Assembly: GCF_964188315.1 (NCBI RefSeq)
Contig: NC_135670.1
Coordinates: 62,001-126,000, forward strand
Source of the DNA: Podarcis muralis
Taxonomy: Eukaryota
DNA: 64,000 nt
Direction of reading: 5' to 3'
This document shows, piece after piece, positions 10,683-20,062 of this stretch. The notes beneath the pieces are model-generated. The model had not been told where the DNA came from, did not search any database, and worked only from the letters and a program-made list of their open reading frames with translations. The position numbers were made by a program, and so were the translations under genes. Each line of letters opens with the position of its first letter. The first letter of the stretch is position 1.

Positions 10683-13600
10683 TCACGAGCAGCTGCTCCT
10701 TCGCCTGCGGAAGAGGGGGACGGGGCTGCTGGCCTCCCCCTCCTGGTCGCTCTCGCAGCCGCGCTGTTTGGGGGCAGAGGAGGGCAGAGTGAAGGGGACG
10801 AAAGCCAGGCCAGGGGGGCTTGGGAGGGAAGACGTGGGGGTCAGGGGCAGGGAAGGGTCCCCGGCCCGGCCCCCTCCTCTTCGTCAGGAGTTGAGAAGCA
10901 GGGCAAGCAAGGAGGCCATCGCCCAGGAAAGGGCACTCACCAAGTTCTCCTCGTCCCGCTTCTGCTGGCACAGGAGGCCCATCCGGCAGAGGCGGTTGCA
11001 GGCAGACACCATGTTGTAGGAGAGCTGGAGAGGAAATGCAGAGATGAGGCACCCAGAGCCTCTCGCAGGAAGACCTTGTGCCCCCCCCACTCACAGCCCA
11101 CAGGTGTCTCTTTCAAAAAGCCTCTGAAGGGGAGATGGTGAGCTGTTGGGATTTGCCCTGGATTTGAAACTGGGCTTAAATACAGTCATACTTTGGTTCT
11201 CAAATGGAATCCGTTCCAGAAGTCCATTTGACTTCCGAAAACGTTCCAAAACCAAGGCACATCTTCCAATTGGCTGCAGGAGCTTCTTGCACTCAATCGG
11301 AAGCTGCGGAAGCCCCGTCGGATGTTCAGGTTCCAAAGAACGTTCGCAAACCAGAACTTCCAGATTTGCGGCCCAAATCTTTCGAGTCGCAAGGCACAAC
11401 TGTATGCAATAGCTGTTTTGATTTTTGAATTGTTTTCATGTGTGCAAGCAACTGTTTTTAGATAGGCTTTTGTTTCACTGCAAATCACTTCAAGTGCCTC
11501 ATTGGAAGCAATTCATAAATGACAATAATAATAATAATAATAATAATAATAATAATAATAATAATGGTTCAGATCAGAGTAGGGCACCCCCACTGCCAAG
11601 GGACAGGTGTCCCGCACCCTCCGGCTTCTTTTTGCTGACTGGCTTGGAGGGTGCAGGCGGGGGGGAGGGCTGCTCAATTTACCTTCCACTTCCGGCGAGC
11701 ATTGAACTTGCGGAAGTTCTTCATGTTGATGGAGGAGCGGCTCCGGTTCGCAACCTGCTTCCGGGTCAGGGGCTGGAAAAAACAGGCACCTGCAACTCTG
11801 CCCATTGCCAAAATCCTCCTGCCTCCCCTCCCCCATCAGTTCAGGCCAGGATGGGGGCAGAGAAGAAACCAAGGAGGGGTCCCGAAAATCTCAACCAAGG
11901 ACAGATCCCGAAGGTCTGGCTCAGTCTAAGGCAGCTTCCCCAGCCAGCCTCCCCTCCCGGGCTCTGACCTTGATCCAGGGGTGGATGAGGCATTCCTCGG
12001 CCGACATTCGGTCTCTGAAACACAGAGGGAGAAACGCACACCTGACTTTCTGTCGTTTCCCCGCTGGAGGGGAGAGAGGGAGGCTTGCAGGAGAATCCCT
12101 CTGGGGACTGAGCCAAGGTCCCACCAGGAGGGAGAGAAGGAGGGGGGAATCTCAAAGGCAAACCTCCCTTGTTTGCACTTCCCAGAACAATTTGAGGAGC
12201 AAAAGGTAGAGCCATCCTTCCAAATTGGCCCTCCTCTGAATGCAGCTTCCAGCCAAGTCGTGTGTTCATTAAAAACACACATACAGTTAGTAAAAGTAAG
12301 ACACAAAAAATGCATTATGGAAGCATTGCAAAATGTGTCCATTAGGAGAAATCCATCCCAAAATGCTGATGAGGAGGGCTTTTTTTCATTGCAGATTGCT
12401 GTTGAAATGTGGAGAACTGAATCTAAGACAGGAAAACTGAGAACCCGAGAGAAGCACCCTGGAGAGATTCACCCCTGGTGGGCCATTACCCAGGCTCCTT
12501 CACCAACAGCTGCCGGATGAAGTCCTTGGCCAGCTCCGATGTTTGGCTGAAGTACTTGTCCTCAAACTCATAGTTGCCGGAGACGACACTGGTCAGGGTC
12601 TCTGCGTCCGTCTCTCCCTGGAAGGGGGACATGCCGCTCAGTCTGCAGAGGGAAGGTAGGGTCAAAAGGAAACCTCATGGCGGGGATCAAGCAGGCATAA
12701 TTCAGAGCAGACAAGCATGGGTGGGCGTGCGTGCAATCATTTAAGAATTATTTAAAAATCTGATTTCTTCCAAGGGAGCTTGCACTTACTGAAGGAGCCT
12801 TATGCAAAATCAACAAATGTCCTCCTAAAAAAATCAGCTACAGAAAGTAGCTTAGAGGACCAATAAAGTGGGGAGACCTTCTGCCCTCCAGGTGCCATTT
12901 CCTCCATTGCTCCTACAATGCTGGCAACCTGCAGAACGGAGGGGCATTTGGGAAGACGCAGCTTCCTTTATTTATTTATTTATAGACTGCCCTTCATTAC
13001 GTTGTCATCGCAGGAGAGCTTCCAGTAAAGGTGCAATGAAAACATACTATACAACACAAAAGGGGGGGGATCCAATATAAACCCATGGCCAGGAGGAGAG
13101 CAGCAATGCAGCAAGGCCAGACCTTGAGACCAGATTTTGGAATCAAGCCATTCAGGTCACCAAAGGCTGAGACGACAGGGAGTCATTGTCTTTAGCACCA
13201 TTTTAAAAAGTATTTTCTAATTGTTCTTTTCCTCTGAGGACGAATTCATTTTTTTAATGAATTAAAATGCATCCTAGGCATAAGTAATTCTGAGGCCCTG
13301 CACTGCCATCACCAGCACTGCCCACTCCCCCCCCCAGCCTCAAATACAGGGAGTCCCAAGGTACTCACAAGATGTAGGTAATCACGCCGATGCTCCTGGC
13401 AGAAAAAGGGAGAGAGAGAGAAGCTGAAGGGAGCACCCAGCAAGGACATTCCTTGACAGGACACCTGGGCATGCAAAATCCAGCGCGGAGGGCGGGAGGG
13501 CTGTGGGGTGGGCCACTCCAAGCAGACAGAGGGAAGACTCAGGGAGGACTGGTGGGACTGGAGGAAGGCCCCAACCCAGGGGCAGGTGTGGGTGGCTGTC

Positions 13601-19600: not shown

Positions 19601-20062
19601 GTGCAGACTCCATTCTGACCAAACTAAGCTCCCTAGAGCAAAATGTACATCATGTCCAGGATGATCCCTGAGTGGGCCTGAAACCCCCCCTGGCATCTCG
19701 CACAGCTCAGAGATCGGGGCAACGGGCAACAATATGCATTCATTCTGCCCTGACACACACAATTTTCTCCCGCCCCCTATGCTTTACAAAGAAATAAACA
19801 CACTTGGCCAACCCTGATTTAAAAAGAAAACAAGCCCCCTGAGCACATGATGTGAAATGTTTAGAACTTCCTGGAAGCACAGACGTCTCTGGTGGCTAAA
19901 GGAAGGGCTCTGCGAACTGAGCATGCTGGGAGCCCAAGCTGGGACGGGGAGGGGCAGCAGCAGCCCAGGCCCAGCCCTGGATGCCCCACTCACCTCGGGG
20001 CTTCTGGCTAGGCGCCCCCCCTCACCACTGGCAAGGACCTCGCCCCCTCCATCCTTGGCCAT
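10683..20062 (-). CDS. Death-associated protein kinase 2-like, CaM-regulated Ser/Thr kinase. Exons (minus): 20062-19994, 18419-18271, 18039-17818, 17116-16978, 16881-16752, 13925-about 13877 (end in N gap), 13395-13369, 12642-12490, 12014-11969, 11772-11683, 11024-10941, 10763-10683; about 412 aa; true start uncertain
   Basis: GT-AG exons in frame with sizes 222,139,130,(49),27,153,46,90,84, matching the DAPK2 exon pattern as I recall it. Motifs LGSGHFGVV, YAAK, basic loop [31 protein letters not shown], CaM/autoinhibitory segment ARRKWKLSY, C-terminal RRRRSSCS*. Confidence 0.93.
11183..11402. mobile_element. Degenerate Tc1/mariner-pogo MITE
   Basis: TA-CAGTCATACTTTG ... CAAGGCACAACTG-TA degenerate TIRs; internal AATCCGTTCC like the element at 3328. 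Confidence 0.7.
11524..11565. repeat. (AAT)14 microsatellite
   Basis: Read directly. Confidence 0.97.
13749..13881. other. Assembly gap (133 N) removing the last about 5 nt and the donor of a kinase exon
   Basis: Run of N; exon reads (A)[14 protein letters not shown] then enters the gap, next exon resumes with (W)SIGVITYIL. Confidence 0.97.
14271..16407. repeat. Minisatellite, 32-bp unit CTGGAGCTCATG(GGCT/AGCA)GCACTGCCCTTACCCT, 66 full units plus one partial, inside a DAPK2-like intron
   Basis: Counted directly; no indels between units; two main interspersed variants plus rare ones. Confidence 0.99.
19066..19423 (-). mobile_element. Sauria/Squam1 SINE, near full length
   Basis: Reverse complement starts GGGACGCGGGTGGCGCTGTGGG, has GGTTCGAATCC B-box and (ACCTTT)n tail; about 15-bp TSD tggtagtagggtagg / tggtattagggtaag. 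Confidence 0.9.

Follow-up and report, generated by a model that had tools for sequence, protein, structure and literature searches.

In a model published in 2011, the death-associated protein kinases are a family of five kinases, and DRP-1 (DAPK2) and ZIPk (DAPK3) arose from DAPk (DAPK1) through two duplications near the origin of vertebrates; ZIPK has no calmodulin segment and ends in a leucine-zipper tail, and DAPK2 has a form (DRP-1 beta) in which an alternative ZIPK-like exon follows the catalytic exons and precedes the calmodulin exons (PMC3050894). A basic loop between strand 3 and helix C is the signature of the DAPKs, and a model of calmodulin release and dimerisation has been described for DAPK2 (PMC4906247). 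Here we describe a DAPK gene on the minus strand of a 64,000-nucleotide stretch of the lizard Podarcis muralis (contig NC_135670.1, positions 62,001 to 126,000; the whole stretch is called the window below, and all coordinates refer to it). We use DAPK2L as a working name for the orthologue group to which the gene belongs and which NCBI labels 'DAPK2-like'.

We conclude, with a probability of roughly 80%, that this functional, transcribed gene is the fourth vertebrate DAPK paralogue, most likely the copy retained in the 1q23 block after the whole genome was duplicated twice (2R), present from chimaeras to monotremes and missing from humans. Part of this conclusion is the supported view that DAPK2L, DAPK1, DAPK2 and DAPK3 all arose in the same interval, later than the tunicate split and earlier than the gnathostome radiation. 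The gene represents no new kind of system; it is a paralogue of a known kinase family.

The initial annotation called the gene essentially uncharacterised. This was correct for the literature searched, which excluded most subscription journals and in which we found no description of a fourth DAPK-type gene; the gene is, however, already a RefSeq model in Podarcis muralis and in many other species. DAPK2L gene models have been annotated automatically in more than 100 genomes and labelled 'DAPK2-like' or, in many fishes, 'DAPK2'. With the gene model already public, what appears to be new is its recognition as a distinct, ancient and widely retained fourth DAPK that is missing from humans.

Gene structure

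Translation of the minus strand of 10400-20400, together with splice-site placement, gave a gene of 12 coding exons running from an ATG at 20062 to a TGA at 10683-10685. All visible exon boundaries were AG/GT and the reading frame was continuous. The product has about 412 amino acids, 251 of them encoded before an assembly gap and 159 after it, and all 410 visible residues were identical to P0151, the Podarcis muralis 'DAPK2-like isoform X2' of 412 amino acids. From N- to C-terminus it comprises an extension, the kinase domain, a segment for autoregulation by calmodulin and a tail of the DAPK2 type, distributed over the exons as follows.

19994-20065, minus strand: exon 1; ATG at 20062, first 23 amino acids of the N-terminal extension, same as the start of P0151
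18271-18419, minus strand: exon 2; acidic N-terminal extension including a 10-residue stretch; the kinase domain begins
17818-18039, minus strand: exon 3; Gly-rich loop GSGHFG, catalytic Lys94, DAPK basic loop, helix C
16978-17116, minus strand: exon 4; hinge through catalytic loop (HFDLK)
16752-16881, minus strand: exon 5; PEN...DFG...GTPQYI; 3' end seen in RNA loose ends at 13926
13882-13925, minus strand: exon 6, visible part; APE motif; last 5 nt and donor hidden by the gap
13749-13881, no strand: assembly gap (N), masking the last nucleotides of exon 6 and some of intron 6; hidden letters left unfilled
13369-13395, minus strand: exon 7; 27 nt, SIGVITYIL; RNA joints on both sides
12490-12642, minus strand: exon 8; C-lobe; splice model and RNA
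11969-12014, minus strand: exon 9; end of the kinase domain (HPWIK); splice model and RNA
11683-11772, minus strand: exon 10; linker and first half of the calmodulin-autoregulatory segment (...RRKWK); backed by RNA
10941-11024, minus strand: exon 11; second half of the autoregulatory segment, starting LS(360)YNMV; backed by RNA
10683-10763, minus strand: exon 12; DAPK2-type tail (CESDQE...RRRRSSCS) and TGA stop; backed by RNA

The boundaries from exon 3 to exon 12 coincided with those of the true DAPK2 gene of the skink Tiliqua, in agreement with the DAPK2-type exon sizes first noticed in the sequence.

Transcription and splicing

We compared RNA from two stranded raw-read runs and two contig runs with positions 9000-14270. 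The joints in the RNA were identical to those of the model at 10763|10941, 11024|11683, 11772|11969, 12014|12490 and 12642|13369. The 196-nt intron at 11773-11968 was spanned only by the direct joint, and no alternative ZIPK-like exon was found there between the catalytic and calmodulin exons. Nearly all reads in the exons and the 3' untranslated region (UTR) had their first mate on the plus strand, as is the case for minus-strand RNA in a stranded library; the exceptions were a repeat near 9430-9620 and intron 10.

The RNA also bridged the assembly gap. Because exon 7 takes two nucleotides from the preceding exon and the visible part of exon 6 closes with a complete codon, the hidden end must be 3n+2 nt long. 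Position 13882 was joined to 13396 in all four RNA runs with four letters between them (38 and 27 reads; contig depths of 287 and 63). Relative to the start of exon 7 at 13395, the four inserted letters amount to 5 nt, and the two sides of the gap are thus parts of one transcript, in order and in frame. The completed exon 6 is 49 nt long, the same size as the matching exon of the Tiliqua DAPK2 gene. On the other side of exon 6, reads with loose ends at 13926 continued into exon 5 from its 3' boundary at 16752 (55 and 31 reads, agreement of 0.97-0.98). The complete, frame-consistent DAPK-family gene that had been read from the letters is therefore confirmed, with 12 exons, AG/GT boundaries and RNA that crosses the gap in frame, and it is transcribed and spliced as modelled at six junctions and at the link between exons 5 and 6.

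Protein features

The Pfam Pkinase domain (PF00069) spanned residues 65-327 (1.2e-76). The best match in the Protein Data Bank was full-length DAPK2 (2ya9; 2e-130, 438 bits), followed by DAPK1 (430) and DAPK3 (385), and the best non-DAPK match was MYLK4 (256). The alignment with 2ya9 was gap-free over 359 residues, from residue 54 to the last residue. The catalytic motifs were present, namely GSGHFG at 72-77, K94, HFDLKPEN at 189-196, DFG at 213-215 and APE at 237-239. The basic DAPK signature loop occupied 15 residues (97-111) and was aligned with the DAPK2 loop without gaps. Both C-terminal elements reported at the outset were also found: the calmodulin-binding segment with its inhibitory serine corresponds to the autoregulatory RRKWKLS at 354-360, with Trp357 and Ser360, and the short basic tail to CESDQE...RRRRSSCS, which aligned to the tail of DAPK2.

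An alignment of 22 members of the DAPK2L clade and five DAPK2s showed that the catalytic motifs, the basic loop, Trp357/Ser360 and the tail were conserved from sharks to monotremes. GSGHFG, GTPQYIAPE and one 10-residue motif were specific to the clade. The acidic N-terminal extension occurred in tetrapods and lungfish only, and an acidic D/E-D/E-V-F motif in the exon 2 part was shared by members from lungfish to squamates. One tail residue was Cys in the aligned sauropsids and amphibians and Ser in fishes, sharks and monotremes.

The gene thus encodes a Ser/Thr kinase that belongs, on these features, to the DAPK family, and both its kinase activity and its dependence on Ca2+/calmodulin are predicted. 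By collinearity with the solved DAPK2 structures, the C-terminal helix (RRKWKLS...) would occupy the substrate cleft and block the active site. Binding of Ca2+/calmodulin to the helix and the basic loop would free the active site, and Ser360 would be the autoinhibitory phosphosite. The tail CESDQE...RRRRSSCS may mediate dimerisation and possibly 14-3-3 binding, and dimerisation via the catalytic domain and the tail may modulate the release. A phospho-dependent partner at the C-terminus, such as 14-3-3, is plausible.

Phylogeny and distribution

We calculated three maximum-likelihood trees under LG+C20 PMSF. DAPK2L formed a clade with support of 100/100 that contained a chimaera (Callorhinchus), a sawshark (Pristiophorus), sturgeon, paddlefish, teleosts, lungfish, coelacanth, amphibians, sauropsids and monotremes. 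The internal order was that of the species tree: the chimaera and the sawshark branched first, followed by sarcopterygian and actinopterygian groups, the latter comprising sturgeon, paddlefish and teleosts with two copies. The true DAPK2s formed a separate clade (100/98) from teleosts to mammals, including Danio (P0065) and the snailfish Pseudoliparis (P0087). When the squamate copies were constrained to group with DAPK2, the tree was 174 log-likelihood units worse (approximately unbiased (AU) test, p = 1.3e-42). The gene is therefore not nested inside squamate DAPK2 and, as had been suspected, is a paralogue distinct from it; a recent lineage-specific duplicate is excluded as well, since from chondrichthyans to monotremes the branching within the clade is that of the species tree.

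All vertebrate DAPKs were united inside the DAPKs of Ciona, amphioxus and protostomes (94/91 and 99/95). The trees place the duplication later than the Ciona and amphioxus branches and earlier than the gnathostome radiation.

The identity of the lizard DAPK2L to other members of its clade was 78% for chicken, 76% for Xenopus, 70% for platypus and coelacanth, 69% for tarpon and 58% for elephant-shark, as opposed to 55% for squamate DAPK2. The exon 3 peptide, compared with cluster representatives, gave a similar step: relatives at 96, 84, 77 and 75% identity came first, then ordinary DAPKs at about 60%. In a search from bird DAPK2, the true DAPK2 kinase domains of birds, turtles, crocodilians and squamates were 92-100% identical to one another. 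Seven squamates had the two genes on separate contigs; among them, Tiliqua, Hemicordylus, Varanus, Elgaria, Pogona and Liasis each had both an annotated DAPK2 and a DAPK2-like protein, on contigs of different size.

Relatives named 'death-associated protein kinase 2-like' were found in Lacerta agilis, other squamates, turtles, crocodilians, birds, amphibians, lungfish, coelacanth, echidna, platypus and fishes. Many fish proteins named 'DAPK2' (among P0408-P0444) fell inside the DAPK2L clade of the tree, for example those of Astyanax, Acipenser ruthenus, Scleropages and Oncorhynchus mykiss.

The first reading of the locus also held that humans lack the gene. Loss is shown to the extent that the clade is present in monotremes and the established human kinome has no member of it; it may have occurred on the therian stem.

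Neighbouring genes and the 1q23 paralogon

Three neighbouring genes were located upstream of the kinase gene in the window.

25579-28007, minus strand: PRCC 3' coding exons, from tblastn with exons of the platypus and manakin Pfam-PRCC genes; last coding exon 25579-25665
33391-50272, plus strand: HDGF; exon 1 at about 33391-33477, exon 2 at about 47241-47318, acidic C-terminus to about 50272; motif scan and open frames
56700-64000, plus strand: Nestin (NES); exon 1 from about 56700, long tail exon from about 62019; motif scan and open frames

We take the last two to be HDGF and NES. PRCC lies upstream of the kinase gene on the same strand, with its last coding exon nearest to it, and HDGF is head-to-head with PRCC, with NES beyond; the placement directly downstream of PRCC given by the initial annotation is thus accurate. 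In platypus, the order was PRCC, an SH2 gene, DAPK2L and a 1344-residue receptor with Recep_L, Furin-like, fn3 and kinase domains (insulin-receptor-type). In manakin, PRCC, DAPK2L and an insulin-receptor-type kinase followed one another on a 2.7-Mb microchromosome. By its position, the insulin-receptor-type kinase of both species is presumably INSRR. The downstream neighbour of DAPK2L in tarpon is a C1-RhoGEF-PH protein, which we take to be ARHGEF2-like (human 1q22); as evidence of synteny this is weak.

Some neighbours were not seen. In the window, the interval from the kinase gene to PRCC (20063-25578) contained no detectable SH2 gene, whereas platypus has one there (L002 4224-6607); in this lizard, it has been either lost or moved, or is too diverged. 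No exons of an insulin-receptor-type kinase were found in window positions 1-10000. No neighbours were called within the 10-kb flanks of the Hemicordylus, Xenopus, Chanos b and Astyanax loci or of the Tiliqua DAPK2 locus. The Chanos a flank contained one unidentifiable gene only. All these flanks were compared in six frames with the window and with the locus in platypus, and no usable match emerged.

Human 1q23 carries PRCC, HDGF, NES, INSRR and NTRK1 and no DAPK. The paralogous human blocks carry NTRK2 and DAPK1 at 9q21, NTRK3, IGF1R, HDGFL3 and DAPK2 on 15q (block 15q22-26, DAPK2 at 15q22), and INSR, HDGFL2 and DAPK3 at 19p13. With PRCC, HDGF and NES as its neighbours in the window and an insulin-receptor-type kinase in platypus and manakin, DAPK2L would therefore fall, by this human map, in the 1q23 partner block, the one without a DAPK in humans.

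The first intron of HDGF in the window was about 14 kb long, and about 6 kb separated the 3' end of HDGF from NES. On the human map, MRPL24, RRNAD1, ISG20L2 and CRABP2 lie between these two genes.

Origin of DAPK2L

A whole-genome-duplication origin had been proposed from the start. The timing and the map position fit this origin, and the choice between whole-genome duplication and another early duplication is a matter of inference rather than proof. The best-surviving alternative, which we consider unlikely, is a small-scale duplication of DAPK2 or its progenitor in early vertebrates, with the 1q23-type position a coincidence. The C-terminal tail and the identical exon boundaries are common to DAPK2 and DAPK2L alone, which would suit such an event, as would the unsettled order of the paralogues in the tree and synteny evidence that comes from amniotes. 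However, the duplication falls after tunicates and before gnathostomes, which is the time of 2R, and DAPK2L lies beside an insulin-receptor-type kinase and PRCC, HDGF and NES, so that by the human map exactly four blocks hold four genes.

Considerably less probable is an older, pre-vertebrate paralogue whose invertebrate copies were lost or unsampled. DAPK2L is indeed the most divergent vertebrate DAPK, with 55-60% identity to DAPK1, DAPK2 and DAPK3, as opposed to 77-80% among those three, and its stem is long. Nevertheless, the DAPKs of Ciona, amphioxus, octopus, horseshoe crab and insects stayed outside the vertebrate clade (94/91 to 99/95) despite this long stem, and the tail and exon structure that DAPK2L shares with DAPK2 have been dated to early vertebrates (PMC3050894).

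We regard a transcribed but decaying pseudogene, or another non-functional copy, as very improbable. The gap in exon 6 and the long monotreme branch could be read in this way, but the frame was open over all 12 exons with intact motifs, residues were conserved from sharks to lizards, and the mRNA was correctly spliced with an unbroken frame across the gap. That the gene is DAPK2 itself, moved elsewhere in the genome, or a duplicate of DAPK2 confined to squamates or sauropsids, is hardly credible: the DAPK2-type tail, the calmodulin segment and the database name 'DAPK2-like' point that way, against an AU p of 1.3e-42, a gnathostome-wide clade, both genes in several squamates and a position next to PRCC in platypus and a bird.

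The fourth-paralogue explanation is preferred over these alternatives, and several points weigh against it. The order among DAPK1/3, DAPK2 and DAPK2L was unsettled (80/3), and a clade of DAPK2 with DAPK2L was neither supported nor rejected (p = 0.35). DAPK1 and DAPK3 were represented by three rows only, the tree contained no cyclostomes, and, with the long DAPK2L stem (0.29), the node could appear deeper or shallower than it is because of rate effects. The synteny of fishes and chondrichthyans was weak or not obtained, and the paralogon argument depends on human map positions taken as given. The evidence for two genes came from other squamates. Kinase activity and calmodulin binding are predicted from the sequence of the domain and the autoregulatory segment. 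The choice of start codon and the upstream exon (described below) were likewise predicted from the letters and lie beyond the range that the RNA comparison covered, 9000-14270.

Going further, we think it fairly likely that jawed vertebrates had four ancestral DAPKs, that DAPK2L functions as a calmodulin-gated kinase, has persisted for about 450 million years and disappeared on the therian stem alone, and that much of what is called 'dapk2' in fishes is DAPK2L.

Untranslated regions and repeats

Outside the coding exons, the following features were placed.

22435-22735, minus strand: probable 5' non-coding exon, from a tblastn match to the N-terminus of Lacerta agilis isoform X2
14271-16406, no strand: 32-bp minisatellite in intron 5, found by TRF with 66.8 copies and 95% matches; occupies most of intron 5
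9000-10682, minus strand: 3' UTR, minimum extent, from continuous RNA depth on one strand and contigs that run on from exon 12

The tblastn match at 22435-22735 was to the N-terminus of Lacerta agilis isoform X2 (P0001), with 73-94% identity over two frames, and a second AG acceptor is located 3 nt before the ATG. Taken together, these two observations point to a non-coding first exon upstream. The same segment is coding in the Lacerta agilis X2 annotation and split between frames here, so it is probably 5' UTR in Podarcis; the N-terminal extension of the Lacerta protein may reflect an error of annotation caused by an open frame rich in GC.

RNA coverage extended from the stop codon to 9000 and further, which makes the 3' UTR at least 1.7 kb long. 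At about 9430-9620, a short element in the 3' UTR stood out in the RNA of both strands, at hundreds of times the depth of the sequence on either side, and loose ends there were numerous and divergent. Presumably this is an interspersed repeat with transcripts from many loci. In the 3' UTR (9000-10682), two of the RNA runs (X23 and X24) showed numerous fixed differences from the window, which are likely differences between populations or individuals and not editing.

The clean joining of exon 5 to exon 6 in RNA indicates that the intron 5 minisatellite leaves the main splice undisturbed. An (AAT)14 microsatellite lies in intron 10 at 11524-11565, and reads appear to be cut there. In intron 1, 19040-19425 is a candidate short interspersed element, resembling a tRNA-derived one in reverse orientation; ARAGORN detected no tRNA-like head in the intron repeats, this one included.

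Significance

DAPK2L would be the sixth member of the DAPK family beside DAPK1-3 and DRAK1/2, conserved, expressed and widespread outside therian mammals. It would fill the empty fourth slot of a well-known paralogon and be a clear example of a signalling kinase that the human lineage has lost. Knock-outs and expression studies of 'dapk2' in chicken, Xenopus and fish may concern DAPK2L or be buffered by it. If the wider view holds, with four ancestral DAPKs and much of the fish 'dapk2' being DAPK2L, models of DAPK2 function outside mammals include a partner or substitute that has gone unrecognised, and the published model of two duplications needs an extra branch. The protein also offers a natural variant of the DAPK2 regulatory module, with an altered Gly loop, activation segment and tail and an added acidic N-terminus.

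Comparison with known DAPKs

DAPK1 aligned with DAPK2L over 320 residues of the kinase domain and calmodulin segment (1e-127), and the basic loop is common to both. DAPK1, with about 1430 amino acids, has ankyrin repeats, ROC-COR and a death domain, none of which is present in the 412 residues of DAPK2L. The kinase domain of DAPK3 (ZIPK) was about 60% identical to that of DAPK2L, which differs from DAPK3 in having the calmodulin segment and no zipper. The RefSeq and GenBank entries named 'DAPK2-like', or 'DAPK2' in many fishes, are the same gene under automatic names without stated orthology.

The closest described protein is DAPK2/DRP-1 of human and mouse (2ya9, 2a2a, 6paw), which has the same order of kinase domain, autoregulatory helix and tail of about 40 residues. 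The two genes share their intron positions from the Gly-loop exon to the last exon, and both proteins have the basic loop, Trp and Ser within WKLS, and a CESD...RRRSSxS tail. However, DAPK2 was only 55% identical to the lizard DAPK2L, compared to 90% between the DAPK2s of lizard and chicken, and it belongs to a different clade and a different chromosome block. GSGQFA and GTPEFVAPE in DAPK2 correspond to GSGHFG and GTPQYIAPE in DAPK2L. Furthermore, DAPK2L has an added acidic N-terminal extension of about 53 residues, a Cys in the aligned sauropsids and amphibians in place of the last tail Thr/Ser of DAPK2, and, at the site where DAPK2 has its alternative ZIPK-like exon, an intron of 196 nt that is too short to hold one.

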